A stretch of DNA of 64,000 nucleotides from Macrostomum hystrix (taxonomy: Eukaryota > Animalia > Platyhelminthes): assembly GCA_950097015.1 (NCBI GenBank), contig CATNEN010000041.1, positions 2,542,001 through 2,606,000 of the forward strand. Direction: 5' to 3'. A model generated the notes under the pieces. It saw only the letters and a program-made list of their open reading frames with translations, searched no databases and had not been told where the DNA came from. Shown one piece after another: positions 42 through 24,156 of the stretch; the stretch's first letter is position 1, and each line of letters starts with the position of its first letter. The position numbers and the translations under genes are program-made.

Positions 42-843
42 CAACAACAACAACAAAGCACACCGCAGTGGAACAGAGTACAGTTCACAAAGGGCGGTGT
101 CAGATCAGTTTTCTCAGTGCGAGCTCTCTGAAGGCTGCAACAGCGTTTAGCAGGCAAGCAGGCACGTAGCGGCGCGTCCGGCCATGTACCCGGCGCCAGG
201 GACCCTGCATTGTGAGCAGCAGGACGTCCTACACCAATTGGGGGCAGTAGGCTTCCGCGCGGATTATGTGGCCCGCCAGTTCAAGCACCAAGCGGAGGAT
301 CTCGCTTGGTGGCCGCAGCCCTCCGCACTGGTAAAGGACTGCGTTGGAGACTGCGTCCGGGTAGCTGATGCTGAAGGTGGCTCGCAACAGGGCCAAGTGT
401 GCTGCGTCCAGCCTCTTCTCCAGAGCCTCAGTCAACGGCCAGGTCTTGGCATTGTAGGTCAGGACGGTTTCGACTACCGCCTGGAATAGTCGAGCCCTCA
501 GGCGGTCTGGCAGCGCGGTGTTCTGCAGGACGACCCGCATAGAGCGGAAGGCCCAGGCCAGGCCATTGCGTCGCATCAAGTCGTCTTGGACACTGGGTAC
601 AAGACCGCTGAGGTACGTGAAGCGCGTGCATCGAGGAATTATTGATTCGACCTGCTGCAAATGGCTGCATGACCGTCGGCGCCCCGGCAAACGATGTTGG
701 TTGGCAGCTCCGCTGGTACAGTCAGCCTCTAAGTCTTTTCAATGTTCACCGCTAGCCCTACCGATGCCGCAAACGCCACCAGGCTGTCCAGCATGCGCTG
801 AGTTCCTTCAGCCGTCGAGGCAAGCAGCGCCAGCAGCGAGCAG
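42..843 (-). mobile_element. RTE-clade non-LTR retrotransposon, 3' remnant (RT C-terminal part)
   Basis: Minus-strand translation gives LALLASTAEGTQRMLDSLVAFAASVGLAVNIEKT and RFTYLSGLVP..LAWAFRSMRVVL..RARLFQAVVETVLTYNAKTW, typical of RTE RT after YADD. It has stops and frameshifts, and a (TTG)n tail at ~44-58. It probably continues at ~3211-3320 beyond the inserted LINE. Confidence 0.75.
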
Positions 844-3209: not shown

Positions 3210-3541
3210 TGCGGCGCTGGCGAGCAGCCGAAGGCGACGCTGAGGGGAAGGGACGGCTGGGGCAGATGAGGTCGCTTGTTCGAATCTGGCGACTCATGGG
3301 GCGGCTCAGTGGGCTAGTCACAGTGTCAATGGGCTAGTCACAATGTCAGTGGCAGTTGGTGAGCAGATGAGCACAACACTTGCCTGCTGCAGATGCGAGT
3401 GACCCTGTCCAAAAACCTGCGCTGTGACACCACGGGCGCCCCGAACTTTGACTCAGAGGACGATCAGAAAGAATAAATTGAATAGGTAAAACTTTAATCA
3501 CACAGGTAAACCAATGATCGAAATTAAACTATCAATCAGCT

Positions 3542-3830
3542 GGAAGTTCCCCTTTTCTAGAACAATAGAGAGTGTATAAAGTATATGTGGAAGTTCCCCT
3601 TTTCTAGAACAATAGAGAGTGTACTTCGGATAAAGCATATGTGGAAGTTCCCCTTTTCTAGAACGATAGAGAGTGTATAAAGTATATATGGAAGTTCCCC
3701 TTTTCTAGAACAATAGAGAGTGTACTTCGGATAAAGTATATGTGGAAGTTCCCCTTTTCTAGAACAATGGAGAGTGTACTTCGGATAAAGCATATGTGGA
3801 AGTTCCCCCATATGGAAGAACATATGGGGG
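3542..3830. repeat. Minisatellite of 47- and 54-bp units ending in a 10-bp hairpin
   Basis: Units start GGAAGTTCCCCTTTTCTAGAAC at 3542, 3589, 3643, 3690, 3744 and 3798. CCCCCATATG-GAAGAA-CATATGGGGG lies at 3805-3830. Confidence 0.9.
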
Positions 3831-4094
3831 CATGTTCATTCAACTGTACTCTGAATAGGAAGAGCTTGTGCGCGAATCCTCCCCATTACTGTCAAATTCA
3901 CTATTGTCTCTTCAGATTCTGTACTACTCTCTTCCCAATCTTCATCATTTACGTTAAAATCTAATTCTAGAATTTCGTCAACGTCTAATTGGTAAAGTTG
4001 GATTTCTTTCGATCAAGAAATGTAAGTGATACCTTACAATTACAATTACAACCCGATTTATGGGTGGCTTTCACAAGACCGAAATTTCATAAGA

Positions 4095-4470
4095 CCCCAG
4101 TTTATTACAGTGACAGTTTTCCTATTCCCCAGTTTATTGCAGTGTCTGTTTCCTATTCCCCAGTTTATTACAGTGTCAGTTTTCCTATTCCCCAGTTTAT
4201 TGCAGTGTCAGTTTTCTATTCCCCAGTTTATTGCAGTGTCAGTTTTCTATTCCCCAGTTTATTGCAGTGTCAGTTTTCCTATTCCCCAGTTTTTTGCAGT
4301 GTCAGTTTTCTATTCCCCAGTTTATTGCAGTGTCAGTTTTCCTATTCCCCAGTTTATTGCAGTGTCTGTTTTCCTATTCCCCAGTTTATTGCAGTGTCAG
4401 TTTTCCTATTCCCCAGTTTATTGCAGTGTCAGTTTTCTATTCCCCAGTTTATTGCAGTGTCTGTTTTCCT
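4095..4470. repeat. 28-29-bp minisatellite (CAGTGTCAGTTTTCCTATTCCCCAGTTTATTG-like)
   Basis: About 13 tandem copies visible directly. Confidence 0.95.
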
Positions 4471-5246
4471 TCTGACGTGGAGTCGTTTTTAATTCTGCCT
4501 TCGGCCAAGTAGCATTCCTCGAAGGTGTCGAGAGCAGGTGGGGTTGTTGGAATCTGGTGCTTAGCTGTCATTTTCATGGGGCTGCAGAAGTATGTCTAAC
4601 GCAAAACCGAATGACCGCAGAGGGTGCCATGGGCAGAATCAGTGGAACAGGTCCGTGCTCCAGCACGGGTTGAAGCAAAAATAAGTATCTAATCAGCAGG
4701 CAGTTAGCTCGAAAAAAACTGTAGTTTTCAAAGTCAAATCCAGATTACCCTGTGACCCTGTACCTCTAGACGCTCTGACCACTGGAGGAAAGCACTGATA
4801 GCTAACTGATCATTTCATTTCAAAGCAGAAATGTTTCAAACTACAGAATAAATTGAGATTATTTATATATATATATGAGTACAATTATACATTACAATAG
4901 GGCGCGCATGTTCTTCATCTACTCAACTCTCAGTATATTTATTAGTGTTTCTGAGATACGCTAAGTGACCATAGTACAGGTTGTGAATAAAAAATAGAGT
5001 CATGCAACCCTGTAGCGTGCAACTATTGAATTTTCTATAATATCTAAAGACGATAACAGATAACCCAGATAATATTTACATTAGTTACAGCACGAGCTGC
5101 AATTTCAGGCTCAGTCTTCGCAAACATCCGCTTTGAGTCTGTGATCGGCAAAGTCGTCACACCGCCAGCTGCTTCTGTCGCTCGATGCGGTCCGCCTTGA
5201 GCAGCGAGATGCTCGACGACAGCGGCTTGGCGTCCGGACCGCCGTC

Positions 5247-5763
5247 CTAAATCACCTGCGCATCGTTGGCGCCGTGGCAGACGCGGATGAAGGCCAGGTC
5301 CTTGGCGATGTCGTCGAAGCTGCGGCTCTTGGTCTCCGGCATGCAGATGAAGAAGAAGAAGATCCAGATGGGCACCACAACGCCAAGGTGGATGAGGAAC
5401 ACGTAGTTCTCGATGGCCAGCTTCACGAAGGTGGTGGACATCAGCAGGTTGGAGATCCACTGGACGCCCTGGCTGAACGAGTAGGCGGCTCTGCGGGGCT
5501 CCTGGCGGAAGACGATGAAGCCGGGAATCGTGCCCGGGCGGAAGGCGAGGCCGCCGGAGTACACAAAGATGAACACCATGGAAGGTGGTGGAGGCGCCGT
5601 ACTTCACACTGTGGGAGTCTTGACCAGGACGGCGCTGACGCAGCGGACCATGAGGCTGACAGCCAGCACCGCCGACGGCACCATCAGGAGGGTCCGGCGG
5701 CCGAACTTCTCCAGCAGCGGCAGCGAGATGATGGTGCATAGCACGTTGAAGAAGCTGAAACTG
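5247..5763 (-). pseudogene. SLC2A/GLUT-type MFS sugar transporter, C-terminal exon, disrupted
   Basis: Motifs LLEKFGRRTLL, PGTIPGFIV, RQEPRRAA, QWISN and MPETKSRSFDDI match SLC2 TM8-12. A frameshift separates the two ORF pieces and the usual AEL/AEI residues before F-RQ are missing. There is a CCCCAG acceptor at 5764-5765, and no upstream exons were recognised. Confidence 0.75.
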
Positions 5764-6803: not shown

Positions 6804-7303
6804 CTGAAAATCCAAGTAAAGATTCCAATTGCCATTCATCGCTAATAGGAAGATAGTTGGCAGATCCCCCGTGAGAACTGTGCTCAGTTTCGGAGTTCTA
6901 AGGTGCCTAGATAAAGTAGTTTGCCTGAATGAACTTTCGGCTGAAGTTCGGCTAAGCGTCAGAAATATGGTTTCAGTGCTTGTTTGCTTGAGCGCTTCTC
7001 TCCATCGCTGCCTTTCAGGTTTCCAACTCTGGCAGTCGTGCTTGCTTGACTGACTGTTGACCAGTTGAGCCAGCTTTCCCAGCTGCTCAGGTCCCTGTAT
7101 GCTAGCCAGAAGCGCTGAGAAGAATTAGGAATAGCTGTCAGATCACCTCTGAGAACAGTGCTCAGCTTGAGTCTTCAAACTCAATCTGTAACTGCTTCAA
7201 GGCTAGGAGTTCGATGGAGCCTAGTTCCATTGGATAAGCTAAATACTCTTAATTAAGATTCGTTCGCAGTCAACCATTCCCAAGTGAGAAGGAAGTCCAA
7301 TAG

Positions 7304-10300
7304 AGGGAAGACATTGCGGTTCTGGATTCTGGAGGGAAGACATTGTGGTTCTGGATTCTGGAGGGAAGACATTGTGGTTCTGGATTCTGGAGGGAAGACA
7401 TTGCGGTCCAGGATTTCTGGAGGGAAGACATTGCGGTCCAGGATTTCTGGAGGGAAGACATTGCGGTCCAGGATTTCTGGAGGGAAGACATTGCGGTCCA
7501 GGATTTCTGTAGGGAAGACATTGCGGTCCAGGATTTCTGGAGGGAAGACATTGCGGTCAAGGATTTCTGGAGGGAAGACATTGTGCTTCTGGATTCTGGA
7601 GGGAAGACATTGCGGTTCTGGATTTCTGGAGGGAAGACATTGCGGTCAAGGATTTCTGGAGGGAAGACATTGCGGTTCTGGATTCTGGAGGGAAGACATT
7701 GTGGTTCTGGATTCTGGAGGGAAGACATTGTGGTTCTGGATTCTGGAGGGAAGACATTGCGGTCCAGGATTTCTGGAGGGAAGACATTGCGGTCCAGGAT
7801 TTCTGGAGGGAAGACATTGCGGTCCAGGATTTCTGGAGGGAAGACATTGCGGTTCTGGATTTCTGGAGGGAAGACATTTGGTTCTGGATTCTGGAGGGAA
7901 GACATTGTTTCTGGAGGGAAGACATTGCGGTCAAGGATTTCTGGAGGGAAGACATTGTGCTTCTGGATTCTGGAGGGAAGACATTGCGGTTCTGGATTTC
8001 TGGAGGGAAGACATTGCGGTCAAGGATTTCTGGAGGGAAGACATTGCGGTTCTGGATTCTGGAGGGAAGACATTGTGGTTCTGGATTCTGGAGGGAAGAC
8101 ATTGTGGTTCTGGATTCTGGAGGGAAGACATTGCGGTCCAGGATTTCTGGAGGGAAGACATTGCGGTCCAGGATTTCTGGAGGGAAGACATTGCGGTCCA
8201 GGATTTCTGGAGGGAAGACATTGCGGTCCAGGATTTCTGGAGGGAAGACATTGCGGTCCAGGATTTCTGTAGGGAAGACATTGCGGTCCAGGATTTCTGG
8301 AGGGAAGACATTGCGGTCAAGGATTTCTGGAGGGAAGACATTGTGGTTCTGGATTCTGGAGGGAAGACATTGCGGTTCTGGATTTCTGGAGGGAAGACAT
8401 TGCGGTCAAGGATTTCTGGAGGGAAGACATTGCGGTTCTGGATTCTGGAGGGAAGACATTGCGGTTCTGGATTCTGGAGGGAAGACATTGCGGTTCTGGA
8501 TTCTGGAGGGAAGACATTGCGGTTCTAGGATTCTGGAGGGAAGACATTGCGGTCTAGGATTTCTGGAGGGAAGACATTGCGGTTCCAGGATTTCTGGAGG
8601 GAAGACATTGCGGTCCAGGATTTCTGGGAGGGAAGACATTGTGGTTCTGGATTCTGGAGGGAAGACATTGTGGTTCTGGATTCTGGAGGGAAGACATTGT
8701 GGTTCTGGATTCTGGAGGGAAGACATTGCGGTCCAGGATTTCTGGAGGGAAGACATTGCGGTCCAGGATTTCTGGAGGGAAGACATTGCGGTCCAGGATT
8801 TCTGGAGGGAAGACATTGCGGTCCAGGATTTCTGTAGGGAAGACATTGCGGTCCAGGATTTCTGGAGGGAAGACATTGCGGTCAAGGATTTCTGGAGGGA
8901 AGACATTGTGCTTCTGGATTCTGGAGGGAAGACATTGCGGTTCTGGATTTCTGGAGGGAAGACATTGCGGTCAAGGATTTCTGGAGGGAAGACATTGCGG
9001 TTCTGGATTCTGGAGGGAAGACATTGTGGTTCTGGATTCTGGAGGGAAGACATTGTGGTTCTGGATTCTGGAGGGAAGACATTGCGGTCCAGGATTTCTG
9101 GAGGGAAGACATTGCGGTCCAGGATTTCTGGAGGGAAGACATTGCGGTCCAGGATTTCTGGAGGGAAGACATTGCGGTCCAGGATTTCTGTAGGGAAGAC
9201 ATTGCGGTCCAGGATTTCTGGAGGGAAGACATTGCGGTCAAGGATTTCTGGAGGGAAGACATTGTGCTTCTGGATTCTGGAGGGAAGACATTGCGGTTCT
9301 GGATTTCTGGAGGGAAGACATTGCGGTCAAGGATTTCTGGAGGGAAGACATTGCGGTTCTGGATTCTGGAGGGAAGACATTGTGGTTCTGGATTCTGGAG
9401 GGAAGACATTGTGGTTCTGGATTCTGGAGGGAAGACATTGCGGTCCAGGATTTCTGGAGGGAAGACATTGCGGTCCAGGATTTCTGGAGGGAAGACATTG
9501 CGGTCCAGGATTTCTGGAGGGAAGACATTGCGGTCCAGGATTTCTGGAGGGAAGACATTGCGGTCCAGGATTTCTGGAGGGAAGACATTGCGGTCCAGGA
9601 TTTCTGGAGGGAAGACATTGCGGTCAAGGATTTCTGGAGGGAAGACATTGCGGTTCTGGATTCTGGAGGGAAGACATTGCGGTTCTGGATTCTGGAGGGA
9701 AGACATTGCGGTTCTGGATTCTGGAGGGAAGACATTGCGGTTCTGGATTCTGGAGGGAAGACATTGCGGTCTAGGATTTCTGGAGGGAAGACATTGCGGT
9801 CCAGGATTTCTGGAGGGAAGACATTGCGGTCCAGGATTTCTGGAGGGAAGACATTGTGGTTCTGGATTCTGGAGGGAAGACATTGTGGTTCTGGATTCTG
9901 GAGGGAAGACATTGTGGTTCTGGGTTCTGGAGGGAAGACATTGCGGTCCAGGATTTCTGGAGGGAAGACATTGCGGTCCAGGATTTCTGGAGGGAAGACA
10001 TTGCGGTCCAGGATTTATGGAGGGAAGACATTGCGGTCCATGATTTCTGGAGGGAAGACATTGCGGTCCAGGATTTATGGAGGGAAGACATTGTGGTCCA
10101 GGATTTCTGGAGGGAAGACATTGCGGTCCAGGATTTATGGAGGGAAGACATTGCGGTCCAGGATTTCTGGAGGGAAGACATTGCGGTCCAGGATTTCTGG
10201 AGGGAAGACATTGCGGTCCAGGATTTATGGAGGGAAGACATTGCGGTCCATGATTTCTGGAGGGAAGACATCGCGGTTCAGGATTTATGGAGGGAAGACA

Positions 10301-12588
10301 TTGTGGTCCAGGATTTATGGAGGGAAGACATTGCGGTCCAGGATTTATGGAGGGAAGACATTGCGGTCCAGGATTTCTGGAGGGAAGACATTGCGGTCCA
10401 GGATTTATGGAGGGAAGACATTGCGGTCCATGATTTCTGGAGGGAAGACATCGCGGTCCAGGATTTATGGAGGGAAGACATTGCGGTCCAGGATTTCTGG
10501 AGGGAAGACATTGCGGTCCAGGATTTCTGGAGGGAAGACATTGCGGTCCAGGATTTATGGAGGGAAGACATTGCGGTCCATGATTTCTGGAGGGAAGACA
10601 TCGCGGTCCAGGATTTATGGAGGGAAGACATTGTGGTCCAGGATTTATGGAGGGAAGACATTGCGGTCCAGGATTTATGGAGGGAAGACATTGCGGTCCA
10701 GGATTTCTGGAGGGAAGACATTGCGGTCCAGGATTTATGGAGGGAAGACATTGCGGTCCATGATTTCTGGAGGGAAGACATCGCGGTCCAGGATTTATGG
10801 AGGGAAGACATTGTGGTCCAGGATTTATGGAGGGAAGACATTGCGGTCCAGGATTTATGGAGGGAAGACATTGCGGTCCAGGATTTCTGGAGGGAAGACA
10901 TTGCGGTCCAGGATTTCTGGAGGGAAGACATTGCGGTCCAGGATTTATGGAGGGAAGACATTGCGGTCCAGGATTTCTGGAGGGAAGACATTGCGGTCCA
11001 GGATTTCTGGAGGGAAGACATTGCGGTCCAGGATTTATGGAGGGAAGACATTGCGGTCCATGATTTCTGGAGGGAAGACATTGCGGTCCAGGATTTATGG
11101 AGGGAAGACATTGTGGTCCAGGATTTATGGAGGGAAGACATTGCGGTCCAGGATTTATGGAGGGAAGACATTGCGGTCCAGGATTTCTGGAGGGAAGACA
11201 TTGCGGTCCAGGATTTATGGAGGGAAGACATTGCGGTCCATGATTTCTGGAGGGAAGACATCGCGGTCCAGGATTTATGGAGGGAAGACATTGTGGTCCA
11301 GGATTTATGGAGGGAAGACATTGCGGTCCAGGATTTATGGAGGGAAGACATTGCGGTCCAGGATTTCTGGAGGGAAGACATTGCGGTCCAGGATTTATGG
11401 AGGGAAGACATTGCGGTCCATGATTTCTGGAGGGAAGACATCGCGGTCCAGGATTTATGGAGGGAAGACATTGTGGTCCAGGATTTATGGAGGGAAGACA
11501 TTGCGGTCCAGGATTTCTGGAGGGAAGACATTGCGGTCCAGGATTTCTGGAGGGAAGACATTGCGGTCCAGGATTTCTGGAGGGAAGACATTGCGGTCCA
11601 GGATTTCTGGAGGGAAGACATTGCGGTCCAGGATTTATGGAGGGAAGACATTGCGGTCCATGATTTCTGGAGGGAAGACATCGCGGTCCAGGATTTATGG
11701 AGGGAAGACATTGTGGTCCAGGATTTATGGAGGGAAGACATTGCGGTCCAGGATTTCTGGAGGGAAGACATTGCGGTCCAGGATTTCTGGAGGGAAGACA
11801 TTGCGGTCCAGGATTTATGGAGGGAAGACATTGCGGTCCATGATTTCTGGAGGGAAGACATCGCGGTCCAGGATTTATGGAGGGAAGACATTGTGGTCCA
11901 GGATTTATGGAGGGAAGACATTGCGGTCCAGGATTTATGGAGGGAAGACATTGCGGTCCAGGATTTCTGGAGGGAAGACATTGCGGTCCAGGATTTATGG
12001 AGGGAAGACATTGCGGTCCAGGATTTCTGGAGGGAAGACATTGCGGTCCAGGATTTATGGAGGGAAGACATTGCGGTCCAGGATTTATGGAGGGAAGACA
12101 TTGCGGTCCAGGATTTATGGAGGGAAGACATTGTGGTCCAGGATTTATGGAGGGAAGACATTGCGGTCCAGGATTTATGGAGGGAAGACATTGCGGTCCA
12201 GGATTTCTGGAGGGAAGACATTGCGGTCCAGGATTTCTGGAGGGAAGACATTGCGGTCCAGGATTTCTGGAGGGAAGACATTGCGGTCCAGGATTTCTGG
12301 AGGGAAGACATTGCGGTCCAGGATTTATGGAGGGAAGACATTGCGGTCAAGGATTTCTGGAGGGAAGACATTGTGGTTCTGGATTCTGGAGGGAAGACAT
12401 TGCGGTTCTGGATTTCTGGAGGGAAGACATTGCGGTCCAGGATTTATGGAGGGAAGACATTGCGGTTCTGGATTTCTGGAGGGAAGACATTGCGGTCCAG
12501 GATTTATGGAGGGAAGACATCGCGGTCCAGGATTTATGGAGGGAAGACATTGCGGTCCAGGATTTATGGAGGGAAGACATCGCGGTCC
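7304..12588. repeat. 5.3-kb satellite of 29-30-bp units (AGGGAAGACATTGCGGTCCAGGATTTCTGG) with higher-order structure
   Basis: More than 170 tandem units. Mixed 29/30-mers in the left half; pure 30-mers from ~9930 to 12360 with a recurring 6-unit (180-bp) variant pattern. Confidence 0.98.
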
Positions 12589-12803
12589 CGGAGTAAAAAA
12601 ACTAACGCACTGCATGGGTCAGAAATATAAATTCAGAGCTTACGCACTAAGTTGATAAATTGCTGTCAATTTTCACTGCTGTCTTTCAGGTTTCCAACTC
12701 GGCCTGTCGTGTTTGCTTCACTGGCTACTGAGCAGTTGAGCCTGCTCTCCCAGCTGCTCGGTTCACTGTTTGCCGGTTAAAAGCGCTGAGTTGGACTCAC
12801 GCG

Positions 12804-14417
12804 ATGGCTTTGCCAGCTATGGTGAATTTTTCCCTGACCTTTCGAACTCATTATCGGACTGATTGGGGTCAGACGGTCGCAATTCTTGGAAACTGCCAGG
12901 AGCTTGGCAATGGAAACACGATTGGTCAAGGAAACAAGCTGACATGGAAAGGCAACAATGTCTGGGAGAAAAAAATCAGAATTCATATGGCTAGAGACAA
13001 GCGGCTTTCATTTAAACTTGTCATTTGTGATGATGAAAACAACCAATTAAGACAGGAAGAAACCAACCGAGAAGTGAATTTCGATCAAGGTGCCAATCTA
13101 AATGAAACTCTTTTCAAATTAGAAACCAACTGGGATCAGCCGGAAGTTCGTCTCTTCCCGAAAGTGGCAACCCAGTCAGTAAGCATTTTAATTTACGCTG
13201 AGTACAAAAGAGGACCTAATGAACCTGAACCCGAGAAGCTGCTCGTTCTCGGCAACTATGTCAGGCTGGACAATGTCGACCACAATGAAATGAACTTCAT
13301 CCAGCGTGACCTGGCAAAAGGAATTTCGAAATGGTGGCTGAAGGTCACGCTGCAAATGACGCGAAGGATCATTGATGATCGATGGAAGCTGCCAGAAACT
13401 GGCCCTAACGGAGAATTTAAGCCGCTTTCCCTGAGACTCATGGCGATAAGAGAAGGCGAGCAAATTAAGCTTGAAGAAGACCAGTTCGAGCCAAACCTAG
13501 CGATTATTGAAGAGTTCAGAAACAAATTTAAATTGCAGTGCACCTTCAATCACAGTCTGATTCTAAGCCCATATAAACGCTGGGTCTGCATTCCAATGCC
13601 CATTGAAACATGCCTGATCCTACGAGACAGCATACTTACTCTGCTCCTCAACATACTGAAGGTGCACCTGCCTGACCCAAACAATACATATGAAAATGTC
13701 AAAAATAAGTATGCCCAGTGCCTGGTTCCGAAGATTAAATTGGATGGCGGTTACGATGGGAGGACTAGTAGAACAAGCGGAGCACCTCATACATTCCACG
13801 ACATTTGGGGAGACGGGCTGGTTGATGAAAGTGGTGCCTTCGCAGACCAAACATGCAAAATAAGAAGTGCGATAGAGTATGTTCGACTGCGAAAAGAAAC
13901 AAATCTGACGGGAAACCGATACAAAGTATGCACACGCCTAACCATAAAGTATCACGCTAGGCAAGGCAACGTGCATGAGCTCTTTAATGGGGCCGGAGAA
14001 AACCAATGGTCCAGCTTCCTGCAGGGAGAGCATTCCGATCCTGAGTACAAAAACGCTCTGATCAAACTGGCGCACTGGGTCAGGGATCAGAGTACTGGAG
14101 AGAACGTGTTGCAGCTGTTCTGCCACAGCGCCGCCATCGTCCGCGGCCGCATGGAGGCCTCGCTGGTGAGCAAGGAGTGCGACGTCATGCACAGCGACTG
14201 GTACTGGTTCTGGAAGAAACACATGGAGGTGGCCGCCTGCTGGTTCGTGCTCATGATGGCTGCCTGGCGACGGCTTAATCAACTTAATCCTACTGAATAC
14301 CCGATCCTAAATAACGAAATTTTCAAAGAAAAAATGAAAGAAGACCGCGCGCCGTTTCGTCCAAACTTTTACGGACGTGAACCTGAACCTGCACAGCTAC
14401 CTGCAAATCAAGCTTGA
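12804..14417 (+). CDS. Intronless 537-aa protein: N-terminal CBM20-like (starch-binding fold) domain, probable second degenerate CBM20, unrecognised C-terminal domain
   Basis: Uninterrupted non-repetitive ORF from ATG to TGA. FRTHYRTDWGQTVAILGNCQELGN...VWEKKIRI...FKLVI...TNR follows the CBM20 pattern. Upstream acceptor TCTTTCAG|G at 12689/12690. Confidence 0.8.
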   Translation: MALPAMVNFSLTFRTHYRTDWGQTVAILGNCQELGNGNTIGQGNKLTWKGNNVWEKKIRIHMARDKRLSFKLVICDDENNQLRQEETNREVNFDQGANLNETLFKLETNWDQPEVRLFPKVATQSVSILIYAEYKRGPNEPEPEKLLVLGNYVRLDNVDHNEMNFIQRDLAKGISKWWLKVTLQMTRRIIDDRWKLPETGPNGEFKPLSLRLMAIREGEQIKLEEDQFEPNLAIIEEFRNKFKLQCTFNHSLILSPYKRWVCIPMPIETCLILRDSILTLLLNILKVHLPDPNNTYENVKNKYAQCLVPKIKLDGGYDGRTSRTSGAPHTFHDIWGDGLVDESGAFADQTCKIRSAIEYVRLRKETNLTGNRYKVCTRLTIKYHARQGNVHELFNGAGENQWSSFLQGEHSDPEYKNALIKLAHWVRDQSTGENVLQLFCHSAAIVRGRMEASLVSKECDVMHSDWYWFWKKHMEVAACWFVLMMAAWRRLNQLNPTEYPILNNEIFKEKMKEDRAPFRPNFYGREPEPAQLPANQA

Positions 14418-14496
14418 AGACAGACTTATCGCTGTGAAACTTGCCGAACCGAATCAAAACTGAAAGTTAATTGTTTTCCCATCCATTAATCATTGT

Positions 14497-15270
14497 TGCA
14501 GTGTCTGTTTTTCCTATCTACTGTTTGAATACAGCGTCTGTTTTTCCTATCCACTGTTTGAATACAGTGTCTGTTTTTCCTATCCACTGTTTGAATACAG
14601 CGTCTGTTTTTCCTATCCACTGTTTGAATACAGTGTCTGTTTTTCCCATCCACTGTTTGAATACAGAGCCTGTTTTTCCTATCCACTGTATGAATACAGC
14701 GTCTGTTTTTCCAATCCACTGTTTGAATACAGTGTCTATTTTTCCCACCCACTGTTTGAATACAGTGTCTGTTTTTCCTATCCACTGTTTGAATGCAGTG
14801 TCTGTTTTTCCCACCCACTGTTTGAATACAGTGTCTGTTTTTCCCACCCACTGTTTGAATACAGTGTCTGTTTTTCCTATCCACTGTTTGAATGCAGCGT
14901 CTGTTTTTCCCACCCACTGTTTGAATAAAGTGTCTGTTTTTCCTATCCACTGTTTGAATACAGTGTCTGTTTTTCCTATCCACTGTTTGAATACAGTGTC
15001 TGTTTTTCCCACCCACTGTTTGAATACAGTGTCTGTTTTTCCTATCCACTGTTTGAATACAGTGTCTGTTTTTCCCACCCACTGTTTGAATACAGTGTCT
15101 GTTTTTCCTATCCACTGTTTGAATACAGTGTCTGTTTTTCCCATCCACTGTTTGAATACAGAGCCTGTTTTTCCTATCCACTGTTTGAATACAGTGTCTG
15201 TTTTTCCCATCCACTGTTTGAATACAGTGTCTGTTTTTCCCACCCACTGTTTGAATACAGTGTCTGTTTT
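14497..15270. repeat. 33-bp minisatellite (CAGTGTCTGTTTTTCCTATCCACTGTTTGAATA)
   Basis: About 23 tandem copies. Confidence 0.97.
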
Positions 15271-15272
15271 TC

Positions 15273-15487
15273 AGAGCCTGTGTTCCTATATCCTGTTATA
15301 CTGCAGTGCCTGTGTTCCTATATCCTGTTATACTGCAGTGCCTGTGTTCCTATATCCTGTTATACTGCAGTGCCTGTGTTCCTATATCCTGTTATACTGC
15401 AGTGCCTGTGTTCCTATATCCTGTTATACTGCAGTGCCTGTGTTCCTATATCCTGTTATACTGCAGTGCCTGTGTTCCTATATCCTG
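15273..15487. repeat. 32-bp minisatellite (CTGCAGTGCCTGTGTTCCTATATCCTGTTATA)
   Basis: 6-7 near-identical copies; the same unit recurs at 25550-25636 and ~26330-26357. Confidence 0.95.
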
Positions 15488-15612
15488 CTCTAGCTTTAAG
15501 AAAGCGGCTTTTTCTTCTTTCTAAACGTTAAAAAGTCTTCCTCTTTATTTTTTTGCACCAAAGTCTGTAAGCTCTAAGCAGTAATAAGCTCTTGCTAGAA
15601 ATCACAGACTTA

Positions 15613-16013: not shown

Positions 16014-17865
16014 CTTCTCCCACCATAGTTCAGACGGTCTGGGCTCTTGCGGATCCTGGTCGATCTTCGAGGCACGTGCTGCGGTGATTGATCCCGCCGC
16101 TGCTGCTGCTGCGGTGCCATTGTTGGAGGCGTTGGAGGCGTTGGCGGTGGCTGATGTAGTGATGTCGGCGGCGGCGGCGGCGGTGGGGGCGGCGGCGGCG
16201 GCGGCGGCAGCGGTGTTGTCGGTGTCGACGATGGCGGCGGTGCCAGTGGTAGGGGCGGTGGCAGTTGTGGCGGCTGACAGACCAGCCCCCGAGGCTGTTG
16301 GTCCACATTGCGGTGAGTCGTATCGCACCGCATCTGGTTTGCATGGCGCCGAACCGTTCTGTTGTCCGGCAGGTTGCACTGGTACCAGTTGCTGCCTTCA
16401 ATGCCCACCACCGTTGCTCGCGTCTAGCTCCGTTCCTTTCCACAGCTGAAGTCTTGAACGAACACTGCCTCGCCCTCCGCGAAGCTCCGCCCGTGCGCCC
16501 CAGAGTCATGCTGCAGCCTTTGCTTCTCCTGGTTCTCGAGGACCCGCTTGGCAATGTCTGGCCTGGGTACATCGAGGAGCGTTCGCAGCGAACGGCGCAT
16601 CAGTAGCTCACAAGGAGCCACTCCTGTCGTTGGGTGCGGCGTTGTGCGGTAACTCAGCAAGAATCTCGCCAGCTGCGTCTCCAGAGAGCTGCCATCGCTC
16701 GCTTGTTTTTTCAGAGAGCTCTTGACTGTCTGCACAGTTCGTTCGGCTTGGCCATTCGAAGCTGGGTGGTAGGGCGGCGTGCGGATGTGCCGAATGCCGT
16801 TCTTAGCACAGAAGGTTTCGAACTCCGAGCTTGCGAAGCAGGGACCGTTGTCCGAGACAATAGCATCCGGCAGGCCGTGGGCACTGAAGGTCTGTCGTAG
16901 CTTCTCTATCGTTGCAGAGCTTGTCGTTGCCGACGTCACGTGAACGTCGATCCACTTGGAGTAGGAGTCGACTACCACCAGGAGCATTCTTCCTTGGACG
17001 GGCCCTGCGAAGTCGATGTGAATCCGCGACCAGGGCCTTGTCGGCAGCGGCCACGGTTGCAGTGGCACCTCCGGACCGACTCGCTGGTGCTTCTGGCACT
17101 CCTGGCATCCCGCTGCCTTCGCCTCGATATCACGGTCCATGCCGGGCCACCAGATGTAGCTCCTGGCCAGCGACTTCATGCGGGACGCGCCAGGGTGTGC
17201 GACGTGCAGCGATTCCAGGAGACTGGATCGACAGGCCTCCGGAATGACGACGCGGCAGCCCCAAAGAATGCAGCCGTCTTGGACCGAGAGCTCCTGTAGG
17301 CGTTTGCCGAAGGGCGTGAGGTCAGGGGACAGGGATCCCTTGTCCGGCCAGGCAGAGAGACAGAAACGAATTACCTGAGACAATGTGGCATCGCGGCGTG
17401 ACCAGTTACGCACATCTGATGAAGTCACCGGACCGGCGTCGAGGCAGTCCATCACTTAAATGACTTCCGGTGGCACTGGAACGTCCTTGGGCCCGCTTGA
17501 TGCAGGAAGGCGGCTCAGGGCGTCCGCCCGGAGCATAGAGGTCCCGCTACGATGTACTAGACGGTAGCGATAGGCTGTCAGGAGCAGCGCCCATCGTTGA
17601 ACTCGGCCGGACGCCAACGTTGGAAGCGGCCGTTCCTGCCCAAGGAGGCCTAACAGCGGCCGATGGTCCGTCAGCAGGTTGAACTCTCGGCCAAACAGAT
17701 ACTGGTGGAATTTTCTGACGCCAAAGACCAGCGCGAGTGCCTCCTTCTCCAGCTGACAGTAGTTCTTCTCAGCGGCACTGAGACTGCGCGAAGCGTACGC
17801 GATCGGTTTGTCCATGCCGTTCTGACGATGGAAGATGACAGCGCCCAGGCCGTACTGCGAGGCGT
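16004..17865 (-). pseudogene. Gypsy pol 3' half (RNase H, integrase, Pro-rich tail)
   Basis: ORF pieces 17456-17815, 16424-17455 and 16004-16411; in-frame TAA at 17456-17458 and a frameshift near 16420. Confidence 0.9.
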
Positions 17866-17893
17866 GTGTGTGTGTGTTGGTTCAGATCCCTCG

Positions 17894-20800
17894 CTAGGCA
17901 TACGGGGGGCGCGCCAGCGCGCCCGACGCCTCGACGAAGGCCCGCACCCCTTCTGGGTCGTTCTGCAGTGGGGACATAGAGCCGTTGATAGCCTCTGGGA
18001 TGTGAAGCCGGCGCTCCTCCGCCCACCTGGGGCAGTCTAACAGGAAATGCCGGGTGTCTTCTTCGGGGGCATTGCAGTGCGGGCAGGCAGCGGTTGGGTC
18101 GCGGCCCCAACGATGCCGGGTGGCCTGCAGGAAGGGCGCCCGGTTGGCCCGAAGCTGGTACAGCGCCACCTCGGCCGTCCGCGGCCAGCCTGGCCGGTGG
18201 ATGAACTGCGCTCCGCCGCAGAGCCTGTGGGGGTGGTCCGCCGGAACTAGCTGATTATACTCAGCCAATTCGGCCGCTCGTCCCTGGCGACGGAGGGCGG
18301 CCCTGGCGGCCGACACGGGGACAGGCTGGGGGTCTTGCTGCATGGCGGACCCTCTCCGGGCCAGCTCATCGGCGGCCTCGTTAAGCGCAAGGCCTGCATG
18401 CCCTGGGATCCAGATGACCGTTGGCCTGTGCTCGCTGGCCAGCTGTTGGAGCAGGATCGCGGCTTGCGCGGTGGCGTGGTCTTGCAGGCACTTGGTCGAG
18501 GACTGCAGCCGCTGGAACAGGGCTCGTGAATCGAACAGCAGCCAGATCGCCGAGCTCGGCTTCCCCCGAAGGAGACCGAGGGCTGCCTCGAGCCCCGCCG
18601 CCGCCGCGGCCGCTTCTGAAGTGGTCGAACTGGTCCACCGTCCGGTCGGGATACTGCCCTTGACGTCGGGGCCGATAGCATTACGCCGGATGATGTAGCC
18701 TCCACCGCCATTTCTGAAGCCTTCTTCCGCCGCCCCGTCTGTCCAGACTTCGAGGTACGGCGGGTCGCTCCGGTGAAGGGAGTCCAGCAGTTCTAAGGCC
18801 CTCGCGCGTCGGACCTCCGGGGGCTCCTCGCGCCCAGCATCCGCCGCAGCGAAGCGGGCCGAGTGATGAGGGGTCCACGGCCGGTGCAGGCAGGAGAGCG
18901 GAACGCACCCCTCAATGTTCCGAGCGTGACATCCCGCCTCCTCCAGGGCCGCAAGCGCCGTCTCTCTCCAGCACCCGCGGGTCCCGCCCCCTCTCGACCG
19001 CAGTCTCGTCGTGTTCGGCGGGGCGTCGGTTAGCTTCCGCAGCGGGTGGCCCTCGCTGAACTGGCGGCATCGCAGGTAGAGCTCAGCCGCCCGAATCCGG
19101 CAAATGATGTCCAGGGGCTGTAGCCCGGCGTCCGCGATCAGCGCAGCAGCCCGGGCACCGGGACTGACACCGGTGATGGCCCGGGCCGCGGCGTAATTCA
19201 TCGACTCCAACCGCTCCCGGTGGGTACGAGCCAGAAAAGGCCACCACACCTCCGCCGCGTACAGCCCCGCCGGGCGAACGTAGCCGCAGTAGAGCCGACG
19301 AAGCGTATCAGCGTCAGCTCCCCACCGGCGGGAAGCCACAGCCCGCAGGGCGTTGAGCCGGCTCCGCATGGCAGCCAGCGCGCGACGGGCCTGCTCGGCG
19401 AAGGTGACCTGGGAGTCCACGAACACCCCCAGGATGCGCGCCTCCTTCCGGCAGCTGATCGTCTGCCCACCGACCTGGAGCTGAACAGAGTTGCGGAAGG
19501 CCTCGGTATTCTCCACGGGATGGGTACTCACCAGCAGGGCCTCGGTCTTGTTTGGGGCCAGTTCGAAGTGATGCTGCTGGCACCAGGTTTCTGCCGCTTC
19601 CAGCGCTTGTTGCATGTTCTCCGCCGCTGCCGCCGCAGTGCCCGCCGACGTCTTGATGGACAGGTCATCGGCGTATTGCAGCGGCTTACAGAGCGGGGCG
19701 GCGGACTGGATGGCGTCTGGCAGGGTACAGGTCGCAATGTTGAATAGCAGCGGGGACAACGGACTGCCTTGCGGGACTCCCTCCTTCAGGATCTTGGGCC
19801 GGCTCATGCTATCAACCCAGCGCACTCGAGCTCTCCGGTCAGCCAGAAACGCGCGGATCCAGCGCAGCCACCGTCCCGGGGCGCTCGCTCGAGCCAGTTG
19901 CCGCAGCACCCCGAGGCGCCAGGTTCGGTCAAAAGCAGCGAAGAAGTCGATCGCTGCCACCAGGGTCCTCGTCATCGGCCGCGTCTGCAGGTCGTCAAAG
20001 GCCGGCTGGGCCAGCTGCGCTAGGGCGTCAACCGTGCTGCGGCTGGCGCGAAACCCGGACTGCGCGTCCGGGAGCAGGCCGATCTCCTCCGCCCAGGCCG
20101 CCAGCCTGCGCTGCACCATCGCTTCTAACGTCTTCCCGACACAGCTGAGCAGCGAGACAGGTCGGAAGGATGCCGGGTCGCTCTTGGGCTTGCCCTTCTT
20201 GGCAATGGGCGTGATGATGGCCGTGCGCCAGCCCGATGGAACCTTGCCCTCCAACCAGCTCCGGTTGAGCAGGGAGAGCAGGGCGACCCGTCCGATCGAC
20301 GGGAGGTTTTGAAGAAAAGCCGGGAGAACTCCGTCTTGACCCGGCGCCTTCCCCTCGATCTCCCTCAGAACGACGTCCAGCTCTGCCAGGTGGAACGGGG
20401 TGGACCGCAGGTCGTCCGTCTCGTTCTGCAGAGCGCGGCGGACCTCCCTCCTGGCAGCCTGCTGATCTGTCTTCGGAACGCGGAGTCGGCTTGCCTCCGC
20501 ATAGGTCGCCATCGCCATGTCTGCCTTCTCCCGGTCAGAGGTCGCGGTCTTGTTGCCCTTGCGGAGCGGGGTGTCAGGGAGCGGCTCATGCGCTCGGCCA
20601 TCGAGGGCCCTGATGGTGTTCCAGACCTTGTTGTCTGGGGACCTGGCCGACAGCTCCGCGACGAAACCTTGCCAGGACTCGGTCTTCGCCTGTTGGTACA
20701 CTCGGTCGGCTTGGTCGCGGGCAGCGCGGTACCTCGCCGCGGCTTCCAAGTCCCCTGGCGCGGCTCTGGATGCCGCTAAGGCGCCGCGAGTGGCGCCCTG

Positions 20801-21847
20801 GGCCCGTCTGCATCGCTCGTCCCACCAGCTCTTGGCCTTCTTAACTCTGCCCTTGGGGATGCAGCTCGCCGCGTCCAGGATCCTGCGGCAGAAGTCTGCA
20901 TTGGCGGCCTCCACGGACCGAAAGCCGTCCGCCGACCAGCCCAGGAAAAAATCACCCGCCCGCGTCGCGTAGGTCGGCCAGTCCGCCCGTCGCAGGTTGA
21001 AGCCAGCTGGGCGGCGTCGCTCATGGGTTTGGGTGAAGGCGATGGTCAGCAGCAGAGGAAGGTGGTCCGACCCCATGGCGTCCCCCACGCGCCAGCTGAT
21101 CCGGCTGGACCAGACAGCACTGCAGAGCGACACGTCGGGCGCCGACTCACCACCCCCCGGGCTCACTCTAGTGGCACTGCCGTCGTTGAGCGCCATCCAG
21201 CCGTGGTCGCTCAGCCAATCGTCGAGCTCGCTTCCAGGGGGGTCCGGATCAGCATTCGGGTCCCAGCTACCGTGAGCGTTGAGGTCGCCCATCAGCAGCC
21301 AGTGCCCATCGGTGGGCCAGCCGTTGGTGTGTAGGGCCCCGTCTCGGTCGTCCGCGTCGGAGTGCCGTACAGGTGGGCGGTAGAGGTTGGTGAGGTGCAG
21401 CGGCTTGGACTTGTCCCCGAACAGACGGATGGTCAGCTGCTCCAGGGCCGCGTTGACGGGGGTCCGCAGACCCGCCTCCACCTCTTCATGGGCCAGGCCT
21501 TGTTTGACCAGAGTGAGCAGGCCTCCATGGTGACCGCCACCCCCCCGGTGGACGACCCGGTCGCGGCGGTGGACGGTGTAACCGCGGAGCTTGGGTGTGG
21601 GCTCTCTCTCGGTGAGGTTAGATTCCTGCAGAAGGGCGATGTCTATTTTGTTTTCCTCCAGCAGCCGTTCAAGTGCCGGTCGACGCGCCTGTAGCCCGTT
21701 GAGGTTCCACTGCAGGACACGGAGATCGGCCTGGATAGGACCGGGGTTCGGCTCAACATCCCCCGACAACAGAACCCGGCGGCGAGACCAGTCGGGGTTG
21801 GCCTGCCACCCTCCCAAAAACCCGCCAGCGGGTTGGGGTGCGGACAT
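17894..21847 (-). CDS. LINE polyprotein (1317 aa from first in-element ATG): 2A-like peptide, AP endonuclease, RT, RNase H, CCHC knuckle
   Basis: GDVEPNPGP; APE motifs QWNLNG, LLQE, NLYRPP, MGDLNAH, GSDHLP; RT GVPQGSPLSP and QYADD; RNase H TDG..SEA..FDS..WIPGH..NEAAD; CPHC..H..C. No stops or frameshifts. Confidence 0.95.
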   Translation of the reverse strand: MSAPQPAGGFLGGWQANPDWSRRRVLLSGDVEPNPGPIQADLRVLQWNLNGLQARRPALERLLEENKIDIALLQESNLTEREPTPKLRGYTVHRRDRVVHRGGGGHHGGLLTLVKQGLAHEEVEAGLRTPVNAALEQLTIRLFGDKSKPLHLTNLYRPPVRHSDADDRDGALHTNGWPTDGHWLLMGDLNAHGSWDPNADPDPPGSELDDWLSDHGWMALNDGSATRVSPGGGESAPDVSLCSAVWSSRISWRVGDAMGSDHLPLLLTIAFTQTHERRRPAGFNLRRADWPTYATRAGDFFLGWSADGFRSVEAANADFCRRILDAASCIPKGRVKKAKSWWDERCRRAQGATRGALAASRAAPGDLEAAARYRAARDQADRVYQQAKTESWQGFVAELSARSPDNKVWNTIRALDGRAHEPLPDTPLRKGNKTATSDREKADMAMATYAEASRLRVPKTDQQAARREVRRALQNETDDLRSTPFHLAELDVVLREIEGKAPGQDGVLPAFLQNLPSIGRVALLSLLNRSWLEGKVPSGWRTAIITPIAKKGKPKSDPASFRPVSLLSCVGKTLEAMVQRRLAAWAEEIGLLPDAQSGFRASRSTVDALAQLAQPAFDDLQTRPMTRTLVAAIDFFAAFDRTWRLGVLRQLARASAPGRWLRWIRAFLADRRARVRWVDSMSRPKILKEGVPQGSPLSPLLFNIATCTLPDAIQSAAPLCKPLQYADDLSIKTSAGTAAAAAENMQQALEAAETWCQQHHFELAPNKTEALLVSTHPVENTEAFRNSVQLQVGGQTISCRKEARILGVFVDSQVTFAEQARRALAAMRSRLNALRAVASRRWGADADTLRRLYCGYVRPAGLYAAEVWWPFLARTHRERLESMNYAAARAITGVSPGARAAALIADAGLQPLDIICRIRAAELYLRCRQFSEGHPLRKLTDAPPNTTRLRSRGGGTRGCWRETALAALEEAGCHARNIEGCVPLSCLHRPWTPHHSARFAAADAGREEPPEVRRARALELLDSLHRSDPPYLEVWTDGAAEEGFRNGGGGYIIRRNAIGPDVKGSIPTGRWTSSTTSEAAAAAAGLEAALGLLRGKPSSAIWLLFDSRALFQRLQSSTKCLQDHATAQAAILLQQLASEHRPTVIWIPGHAGLALNEAADELARRGSAMQQDPQPVPVSAARAALRRQGRAAELAEYNQLVPADHPHRLCGGAQFIHRPGWPRTAEVALYQLRANRAPFLQATRHRWGRDPTAACPHCNAPEEDTRHFLLDCPRWAEERRLHIPEAINGSMSPLQNDPEGVRAFVEASGALARPPYA

Positions 21848-21867
21848 CGAAGCGACATCCGGGGAGC

Positions 21868-21935
21868 CGGAGCATTTGGCACAGAACGCATCTGTGACAC
21901 CTGTCCCCACGTGAAGGGAGCTCCGTTTGACAAGC
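21868..21935 (-). ncRNA. HDV-like self-cleaving ribozyme at the LINE 5' end
   Basis: Manual fold: P1 GCUUGUC/GACAGGU (G1.U wobble), P2 CGGAGC/GCUCCG, P3 CCC/GGG, L3 UUCACGU, 1-bp P1.1 (C-G, with U.U), P4 CACAGA/UCUGUG, J4/2 CCAAAU with candidate catalytic C. Confidence 0.85.
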
Positions 21936-21947
21936 ACTGCGAGGCGT

Positions 21948-24156
21948 CGCACTCCAGGTAGAGGTCCTCTGCCGCATTGTAGTGCACCAGGACACTTGGG
22001 TGCGTGAGTAGCTGCTTTGCTGCGGCAAACGCTTTGGCCTCACCGCGGTCCCACCGCCACTTCGAGTTTTTCTCCAGTAGCCGGTGTAGCGGTGCCAGCA
22101 CGCTGGAGAGATTCGGCAGGAACTTCCCGTAATAGTTGATGAGGCCCAAGAAGCTCCTGAGCTGAGTCGTGTTCGTCGGTGCTGGTGCATCTAGCACGGC
22201 TTGGACTTTGTCATCGAGTGGGTGCAGTCCCTCTGCGTCGATGCGGTGACCCAGGTACGTGACCTCGTCCTGGAAGAATCTGCACTTCTCGAGCTTGCAG
22301 GTCAGGCCGGATTCCTTGAAGACCCTCAGGACCTCTCTGAGATTGTGCAGATGGCTCGCGTCGTCCTCTCCCGTGATGATGACATCATCGATGAAGGATG
22401 CTGTGTGCGGAATTCCACGCAGCAGGTTGTCCATCACTCGTTGGAAGACGCTTGGGGCAATCGACACCCCAAAAGGCAGTCGGGTGTAGCGCAGGAGTCC
22501 GACGGAAGTGTTGATTGTACAGACCTCTTGGGCTTCCTCGTCCAGCGGAAGCTGCATAAATGCGTTGGTCAGGTCCAGCTTAGAGAACTTTTGCCCGCCA
22601 GTCAGCCGGGCGAACAGTTCGTCGATGTTTGGCAGGGGGTACGCCTCCGGCCGAATCGCTGTGTTGACTCCCTGCTTGAAATCTGCACAGACGCGGACGC
22701 TGCCGTCCGATTTCATCACTGGCACGATCGGTGACGCCCAGTCGGAGTTCTTGACCGGCATCAGCACTCCTTGGTCGATTTCCTTCTGCAGCTGCTGTTC
22801 GACTTTTTCACGCAGCGCGAAAGGAACAGGTCGCGCCTTGAAGAACTTCGGTCTGGCGGTCTCCTTGAGACTGATAGACACTGGCTTGCCGTTGAACTCT
22901 CCCAGGCCTTGGAAGACATCTGAGAACTCCTTGATGAGCTTCTCAGCAGGGTCACCGATGCGCTTGACGGACTGCCAGTCCAGGCGCAGCTGAGCCAGCC
23001 AATCCCGACCGAGGAGGCTCGGACCGTCGCCGGCGACAACGAGAAGCCGCAGTTGCGCTTCATCAGAGTCGGCGGACACTCGCACGCGGACGGACAGCTG
23101 GCCGAGCACGCGCACGGTCTGACCGGTGTAGGTGCTGAGTTGAATCGTTGACCGGGACAGTGTAACCAGTCCGTCCAGGTTCGCCTTGAATGTGCGCTCA
23201 GACATCAGCGATACAGATGCACCTGTGTCTACCTCCATCTCGTGCTGCCGCCCTTCGATAAAAACCGATGTCCTGATCGGTGGAAAACTTGACTGCGGCC
23301 GATCCGCCCCCAGATGATAAAACGGATACGACACCTCATCTGGACTCGCGCTCGTGGTCACCTGCTCCACCAGCTGGTGTGTCTGCTGCTGCCGCAGTGC
23401 ATCTGTCTTACAGGCCTTCGCTGTGTGTCCGGTCTTGCTGCACTTAAAGCAGCGCTTGTCCACGAAGGGGCACTTGCTGGCCAGGTGACGGGTTGAGAGA
23501 CAGCGAAAGCAGCGCCGACGACTTTCGGCTCCCAGCTGTCTGCTGTCTTCCTCTGGTCGCTGCCGCTCCATCCGTAGCACAGCGTCGCTTTCCGTCGATG
23601 GCGTCGGTGCTGCCGAGTTCGCTGATCCCAGCGACCGGCAGTTGATGGCTGCCGATTCGCCCGCCCGAGCGATCTCCTTTGCTGTGTCGAGGGTGAGGGT
23701 CGGCTCCATCAGCAGCCGGCGTTGGATTTGCTGATCCGCGATGCCGCACACCAGTCTGTCCCGCAGCATGTCCGACAAGCTGTTGCCAAAGTTGCAGAAC
23801 TCGGCCAGCTTCCGCAGCTCTGCCAGAAACTCTGCCACAGTCTCTCCAGCACGCTGGGCTCGGTTGTTAAAGTGGAACCTTTGGACGATCTCACTTGGTC
23901 TCGGGTTGAAATGACCGCTCAGCAGCGAACAGATGTCGTCGTACGATTTGCCAGCAACTTTGGCTGGAGAGCACAGGCTTCTAGCCAATTGAAACGTCTT
24001 CCTTCCACAGACACTCAGCAGGGTTGCTCTCTTCTTGCCCTCGTCAGTGATGTCCTGGGCGAGAAAATGCTGCTCCAGGCGCTCCTGGTATTCATCCCAG
24101 GTTTCGACGGAGTCTTCAAATTCTCCGATTCCGTGGGCCGGCATGGCTGGGCCCAA
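21948..24156 (-). CDS. Gypsy gag-pol 5' half (gag, protease, RT, start of RNase H)
   Basis: ORF 21643-24156 is open up to the LINE junction at LECDASQ; CFRCLSTRHLASKC and CFKCSKTGHTAKAC knuckles. Confidence 0.92.

Follow-up and report, generated by a model that had tools for sequence, protein, structure and literature searches.

The 64,000-nt stretch of Macrostomum hystrix DNA analysed here (the window) carries a LINE inserted into a Ty3/gypsy gag-pol gene (Table 1). The LINE lies in the same orientation as pol and splits the gypsy RNase H motif between DAS and QYGLGAV. In contigs from four public runs the gypsy site is uninterrupted and the LINE absent; these contigs follow the gypsy side to 21936 and continue into the reverse complement of the sequence beyond the 3' TSD, showing that the insertion and its limits are real. 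The mechanical ORF of the element (21952..17894, minus strand) comprises 1352 codons without internal stops, and Pfam assigns full-length APE, RT and RNase H domains to the 1352-aa product (Exo_endo_phos 80-297, RVT_1 589-821, RNase_H 1067-1202). Its first in-frame ATG is at 21847, 21 nt past the ribozyme fold described below. The stretch from +1 to the APE domain holds no distinct ORF1, and an exact-protein look-up of the ORF product gave no record. The element, apparently intact, thus has the organization of an L1Tc-like LINE: a single ORF with APE, RT and RNase H domains, a C-terminal nucleic-acid-binding motif, an N-terminal 2A and no ORF1. It can be called Ingi-like in architecture only. 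Two plus-strand ORFs, one with a CBM_20 starch-binding domain (12804-14417) and one with five colipase-like stretches (14471-15493), adjoin the gypsy/LINE block. An array of 30-bp tandem repeats (~7235-12600; 133 copies in register, strong GC skew) reads on the minus strand as the 10-aa repeat NPGPQCLPS(R/I), whose NPGP strings are not LINE 2A sites.

Table 1. Coordinates of the features described in the text; those of the relatives refer to their own loci
Feature	Position	Strand	Remarks
LINE insertion, whole	17866..21935	-	4070 nt; ends in (CA)n tail; bounded by TSD copies
Single LINE ORF from first in-frame ATG	17894..21847	-	1317 aa; APE, RT, RNase H, weak zf-RVT
2A 'stop-go' motif LLSGDVEPNPGP (translation)	21737..21772	-	Just before APE domain; kept in relatives
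5' TSD copy ACGCCTCGCAGT	21936..21947	-	12 bp; matches 3' copy
3' TSD copy ACGCCTCGCAGT	17854..17865	-	Directly after (CA)n tail
Host Ty3/gypsy gag-pol, upstream part	21936..24156	-	Zinc knuckle, protease, RT, start of RNase H (Pfam)
Host gypsy pol, downstream part	16424..17865	-	Remainder of RNase H, integrase; rve, Integrase_H2C2 (Pfam)
HDV-like ribozyme	21868..21935	-	68 nt; nested double pseudoknot; predicted cut 5' of G21935
P1 5' strand GCUUGUC	21929..21935	-	Partner GACAGGU 21899-21905; 7/7 pairs (script)
P2 5' strand CGGAGC	21920..21925	-	Partner GCUCCG 21868-21873; 6/6 pairs (script)
P3 CCC/GGG around L3 UUCACGU	21906..21918	-	3 bp, 18-20/28-30 (script)
P4 hairpin CACAGA/UCUGUG, loop UGCGU	21880..21896	-	6/6 pairs, 0 mismatch (script)
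J4/2 CCAAAU	21874..21879	-	Candidate catalytic cytosine C21879 or C21878 (C57 or C58)
Fold in relative L001	81-148		Upstream of 2A
Fold in relative L012	1397-1477		Upstream of 2A
Fold in relative L002	77-150		Upstream of 2A
Fold in relative L018	165-229		Upstream of 2A
Fold in relative L017	331-400		Upstream of 2A
Fold in relative L016	161-225		Upstream of 2A; hand-parsed, missed by models
Fold in relative L003	359-425		Upstream of 2A

HDV-like ribozymes are nested double pseudoknots that cleave at the first nucleotide of P1; they have a P1 of 6-7 bp, a P2 of ~7 bp, a P1.1 of 1-2 bp, a core formed from L3 and J4/2, and a necessary J1/2 spacer (PMC4908430). The first 68 nt of the LINE (minus strand, 21935..21868) read GCUUGUC AAA CGGAGC U CCC UUCACGU GGG in the first half and GACAGGU GU CACAGA UGCGU UCUGUG CCAAAU GCUCCG in the second, and contain P1, P2, P3, P1.1 and P4 in canonical order, as do seven relatives. 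P1 (1-7/31-37) is made up of G1.U37, C-G, U.G (U3.G35), U-A, G-C, U-A and C-G, P2 (11-16/63-68) of 6 bp, P1.1 of the single pair C23-G38 (C21913 with G21898) beside U22.U39, and P4 spans 40-45/51-56; J1/2 is 3 nt long. By sequence, the core of L3 and J4/2 is present, with a candidate active-site cytosine in J4/2. Cleavage sites of this family typically have G in a G.U wobble; at the site predicted here G1 pairs with U37 and directly follows the TSD. The sole odd detail is U17, a one-base bulge at the P2/P3 boundary that canonical HDV and CPEB3 ribozymes are not known to have. The nested part (P2, P3 and P4) is the minimum-free-energy fold of the sequence, a modest gain over shuffles (z -1.8).

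The initial annotation had proposed these elements from P1 to J4/2, and a script recovered every one of its pairings on the minus strand; the fold also proved to be the only match to a generic HDV descriptor on both strands of the window (128 kb). This descriptor, composed after the sequence had been seen and somewhat tailored, calls for G at +1, a 7-bp P1, a 3-bp P3, a 6-9-nt L3 with C in third position, paired to a G directly after P1, a P4 of at least 4 bp, C-N-R-A in J4/2 and a P2 of at least 6 bp. In 100 dinucleotide-preserving shuffles it matched on average 0.08 times per window, and a chance match would also need to fall on the first base of a LINE. A relaxed descriptor gave false matches in GC-rich loci. 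No HDV-family model of Rfam (HDV, CPEB3 or drz-type) matched the window at the gathering score, nor, with the CPEB3 model included, positions 21700-22100 at E<=10. Such models have no means of representing the pseudoknot and are tuned to a narrow range of sequences, and the HDV family has little primary-sequence conservation, so the Rfam result weighs little against the fold. The window holds no further copy at up to three mismatches, and a weak match to the first covariance model at 59933-59994 (minus strand, E 0.75), which lacks P3/L3 and a downstream 2A, was rejected as a false positive.

Relatives of the LINE were retrieved from metagenome contigs by two protein searches with the ORF, one a word-index search and the other an exhaustive HMMER scan of cluster representatives. 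An N-terminal NPGP motif is present in 37 of the 156 proteins retrieved, and DNA was fetched for ten NPGP-bearing relatives. A covariance model built from the nested helices of the window and L001 blindly found the fold in L012 (E 2.7e-10) and L002 (3e-10), and a model of these four sequences did the same for L018 (1.6e-9) and L017 (7e-8) and placed L003 at E 0.006-0.01, the best match in its search. Matches in relatives always fell on the coding strand, upstream of 2A, and the protein identity of the seven fold-bearing relatives is 31-57% where measured. A seven-sequence model additionally found L004 (E 4e-4). In this related 5' element (L004 81-186) P2 is CGGUGCUC/GAGCACCG, P4 and J4/2 (UCGAA) resemble those of L003, and a 45-nt insert occupies the place of P3/L3; the element could be a variant of the HDV type that carries an additional domain, or else a degenerate copy. 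No clean HDV fold was found in the more distant relatives L013-L015 (32-33% identity), by eye or by model. L015 encodes a 1683-aa LINE ORF (227-5278) with an OTU domain (PF02338) besides APE, RT and RNase H in precomputed Pfam annotation. The L003 contig ends in CTGTCTCTTATACACAT (5317-5333), presumably a Nextera adapter, which indicates that its assembly was not fully trimmed.

Three of the LINE copies examined, all in sense orientation, lie within LTR-retroelement pol genes: that of the window in the gypsy RNase H, one in an integrase zinc finger (L001 4180-5221) and one in an RT-RNase H linker (L003 1-358). Such sense insertions may reflect dependence on read-through transcription, or sampling alone. 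Site-specific targeting of the gypsy RNase H is ruled out by the position of L001 and by L012, which lies in a tandem repeat, and is also contradicted by the unrelated flanks of sister copies.

Comparison of the window with its seven relatives shows that the fold has been maintained through compensatory changes. MAFFT alignments of the ribozymes are non-structural, so a model-guided alignment of five sequences (pseudoknot included) was used together with a script-checked hand parse of all eight, each parse being an exact substring of its locus. Of the 184 pairs in the hand-parsed set, 180 are standard; three of the four defective pairs are in P1 of L001, whose first bases appear to have been replaced by target sequence after a 3-nt truncation, and the fourth is in P1 of L002. 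In the five-sequence alignment 93.9% of cells are paired, a share that falls to 37-55% if the 3' partners are shifted by 1-3 columns. Both sides have changed in 13 of the 23 pairs, and every pairing measure lies above its value in all 500 shuffles. P2 is paired in 100% of cells and P1 in 82.9%, the latter despite an out-of-register L002 row and the defective L001 row; four pairs have changed on both sides in each of P1, P2 and P4. P1 lay outside the covariance model, so its alignment was not fitted to pairing. P3 in relatives is GCC/GGC or GGG/CCC; in L016 both of its strands are flipped (GGG/CCC), and U-A replaces the C-G of P1.1.

Invariant or nearly so are the parts from which the HDV active site is built, namely L3, the nucleotide that follows P1, and C-N-R-A in J4/2. 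L3 is UUCNCGY in five of the eight sequences, C23 is kept or covaries with position 38, and C-N-R-A occurs in all eight (CCAA in six, CCGA in L016, CGAA in L003). Position +1 is G in six, four of them with the G.U pair, and C in L016 and L017. Beyond L3 and J4/2 the primary sequence is poorly conserved. The reading frames across the ribozyme differ between the window (…SLHVG…) and L001 (…APFTWG…), which are 86% identical in nucleotides without gaps, indicating that conservation acts at the RNA and not the protein level. The homologues thus back the HDV-like pairs by covariation, and the compensatory changes support the reading as a functional ribozyme that the initial annotation had proposed for the window. 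A diverged sister lineage, present in a single run, has 16 changes over 150 positions, 3 of them in the 64 ribozyme nucleotides covered and 13 in the next 86 nt. Two of the three fall in the P4 loop and one breaks G13-C66: C66>A at 21870 disrupts the middle P2 pair in a contig of depth 55, compared with 413 for the main unitig. The lineage may be an inactive branch.

The predicted cut had been said to match the TSD boundary to the nucleotide. The coincidence with the TSD and the empty site stands, with an ambiguity of 0-2 nt. The target reads ...CGCAGT/ACGG and the 5' junction ...CGCAGT/GCUUG, so the inserted DNA cannot start 3' of G21935; with a TSD of 10 bp, the GT that ends the duplication could formally be assigned to the element. 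Two contigs of other copies, with unrelated flanks, match the window 1-2 nt further 5', through 21937 (GT) and 21936 (T, within a T-run). In the deepest run the main unitig aligns over 21782-21932 and has three more letters that do not align; if colinear, it ends at G1. The common DNA 5' end therefore falls 0-2 nt from the predicted cut, and a match to the nucleotide is the parsimonious reading. Extending P1 to 9 bp from the GU preceding G1 (G-2.U39, U-1.G38) is feasible in the window and L017 but not in the other six sequences, and was rejected also because it would abolish P1.1. The TSDs of L001, L002, L003, L012 and L017 are short or ambiguous and place the 5' end to ~3 nt or not at all. 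Two RNA-labelled public runs cover the gypsy side only, and low-depth contigs of three further public runs end at 21853 and 21889 and are uninformative on 5' ends.

A fold kept with covariation and placed at the insertion boundary argues for catalysis. Alternatively, the conserved HDV-shaped leader could serve chiefly another role, such as cap- or AUG-independent entry of ribosomes or binding of the element's own protein (the R2 protein binds its 5' pseudoknot), with cleavage weak or absent. The reading frame between the ribozyme and the 2A lends this some support: the 2A frame is free of stops from +1 to the 2A (21935-21737, minus strand, in the window) in all eight elements, while 10 of the 16 other frames over this span contain stops and three elements (L001, L012 and L016) lack an in-frame AUG there. 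NPGP lies 173-197 nt from +1 in seven of the elements and 240 nt from it in L018. The HDV-like ribozyme of R2 has IRES-like and protein-binding roles (PMC6765202). A chief or exclusive role of this kind is nonetheless improbable: parts needed only for catalysis are retained (C-N-R-A in J4/2, and the L3 cytosine with its covarying P1.1 partner), G or G.U persists at +1 in the proportions given above, the DNA copies begin at the P1 base as cleavage predicts, and in R2 both roles coexist. Many distant relatives share the short motif GF(L/F)xxG...P ~20 aa before the 2A (AGGFLGGWQANPDW in the window), which indicates that the leader peptide is partly conserved at the protein level.

A second alternative, considerably less probable, is a DNA-level internal promoter like Pr77 of L1Tc that starts transcription at +1, the HDV-like fold being incidental. 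Such a start would also account for the common 5' ends, and the same 77 nt of L1Tc act as promoter and ribozyme (PMC3383444). A promoter, however, predicts neither the changes on both sides of 13 of 23 RNA pairs across five helices nor a pseudoknot kept in register, and sequence outside L3 and J4/2 is poorly conserved. Least credible of all is a functionless chance fold in GC-rich sequence, which could appeal to the modest z-score and to the errors of the relaxed descriptor in GC-rich loci, but which is already contradicted by the same fold at the same place in seven diverged relatives, as predicted by a functional HDV-like ribozyme and not by chance, and by a strict expectation of 0.08 matches per window when the match falls on the first base of the LINE.

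A conserved HDV-like ribozyme fold is thus a real feature of the 5' end of this apparently intact LINE, and comparative sequence evidence makes it very probable that selection maintains this fold as an HDV-type ribozyme setting the 5' end of the LINE RNA. The LINE lies in sense orientation inside gypsy pol, no upstream sequence of its own was seen, and it is probably transcribed within longer transcripts of the host or of gypsy. The first 68 nt of its RNA would act as a self-cleaving ribozyme with a CPEB3-like core, folding into a nested double pseudoknot in which P1, P1.1 and P4 stack on one another and P2 stacks on P3. A J4/2 cytosine (C57 or C58), with Mg2+, would cut the bond 5' of G1, and the released RNA would begin at the first base of the element with a 5'-OH. 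This RNA would be the template for target-primed reverse transcription, which would explain why full-length copies start at or within 2 nt of G1, and likely also the mRNA for a 2A-led APE-RT-RNase H polyprotein.

Rather more doubtfully, the ribozyme might double as a translation entry site, with the 2A serving to discard the leader peptide that the ribozyme encodes. If so, translation of the uncapped cleaved RNA would begin inside the HDV fold or immediately downstream of it, with no need of an AUG, and 2A 'stop-go' would free a ~60-aa leader to leave a clean APE-RT-RNase H protein. This would explain why ribozyme and 2A accompany each other at a constant spacing in the single-ORF LINEs of organisms as far apart as trypanosomes and animals. 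It would also tie the core of this LINE clade, whose L3 is identical to that of CPEB3, to the as yet unexplained source of the CPEB3 ribozyme in mammals. The eight aligned examples provide a ready covariation data set, and the window copy, being apparently intact, is a direct test object for both cleavage and AUG-independent translation.

HDV-like ribozymes are established at the 5' ends of R2, RTE and trypanosome L1Tc elements. The present elements add an animal family of single-ORF LINEs, and relatives from several unrelated metagenome samples, to these ribozyme-headed LINEs; the 5' ribozyme is of a known type and the animal LINE family that bears it is new. No report of HDV-like ribozymes in animal Ingi-like elements was found in a literature search of limited scope. 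A close parallel is L1TcRz/Pr77 of Trypanosoma cruzi L1Tc (Ingi clade), an element with TSDs usually of 12 bp, whose ORF combines APE, RT, RNase H and a DNA-binding domain and whose first 77 nt contain an HDV ribozyme (PMC6765202). As in the window, the ribozyme occupies the first nucleotides of a single-ORF APE-RT-RNase H LINE with ~12-bp TSDs, and the ORF bears an N-terminal 2A peptide; the role of L1TcRz is to free the element RNA from longer transcripts. The two differ in host (kinetoplastid or animal) and in ribozyme length (77 or 68 nt). Within the literature covered, the pairing of a 2A with an HDV ribozyme has been described for L1Tc only.

At the level of the core, the window ribozyme resembles that of CPEB3 in detail: its L3, UUCACGU, is that of the proven CPEB3 ribozyme as given by a mouse Cpeb3 primer (GTTCACGTCGCGGCC) 18 nt from the cut site, and both have a 3-bp P3 and a compact length of ~68 nt. 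The CPEB3 ribozyme likewise has a single C-G P1.1 beside U.U and a GU after P1. It differs in being intronic in a host gene instead of at a transposon end, and in its J4/2, which is CGAA where the window has CCAAAU, and it is not known to have a bulge like U17 of the window; the Rfam CPEB3 model does not match the window. R2 and RTE elements also carry a 5'-terminal HDV-like ribozyme that processes a co-transcript to the exact 5' end of the element, with a proposed role in cap-independent translation of an ORF possibly lacking an AUG. R2, however, inserts site-specifically into 28S rDNA, uses a restriction-like endonuclease and has a ribozyme of ~184 nt with peripheral domains, whereas the LINE described here has an APE endonuclease and several insertion sites.

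Animal LINEs with 2A peptides have been described (Odon et al. 2013; Luke et al. 2013), among them a mollusc element of the Ingi clade. Like the window element, they have a single ORF without ORF1 and a 2A 40-80 aa from the N-terminus. Ribozymes are mentioned nowhere in these two papers, whereas in the eight elements compared here an HDV-like fold always precedes the 2A at a near-fixed distance. Given that silence, this 5' expression cassette may have a much longer history, or a wider distribution, than is on record.
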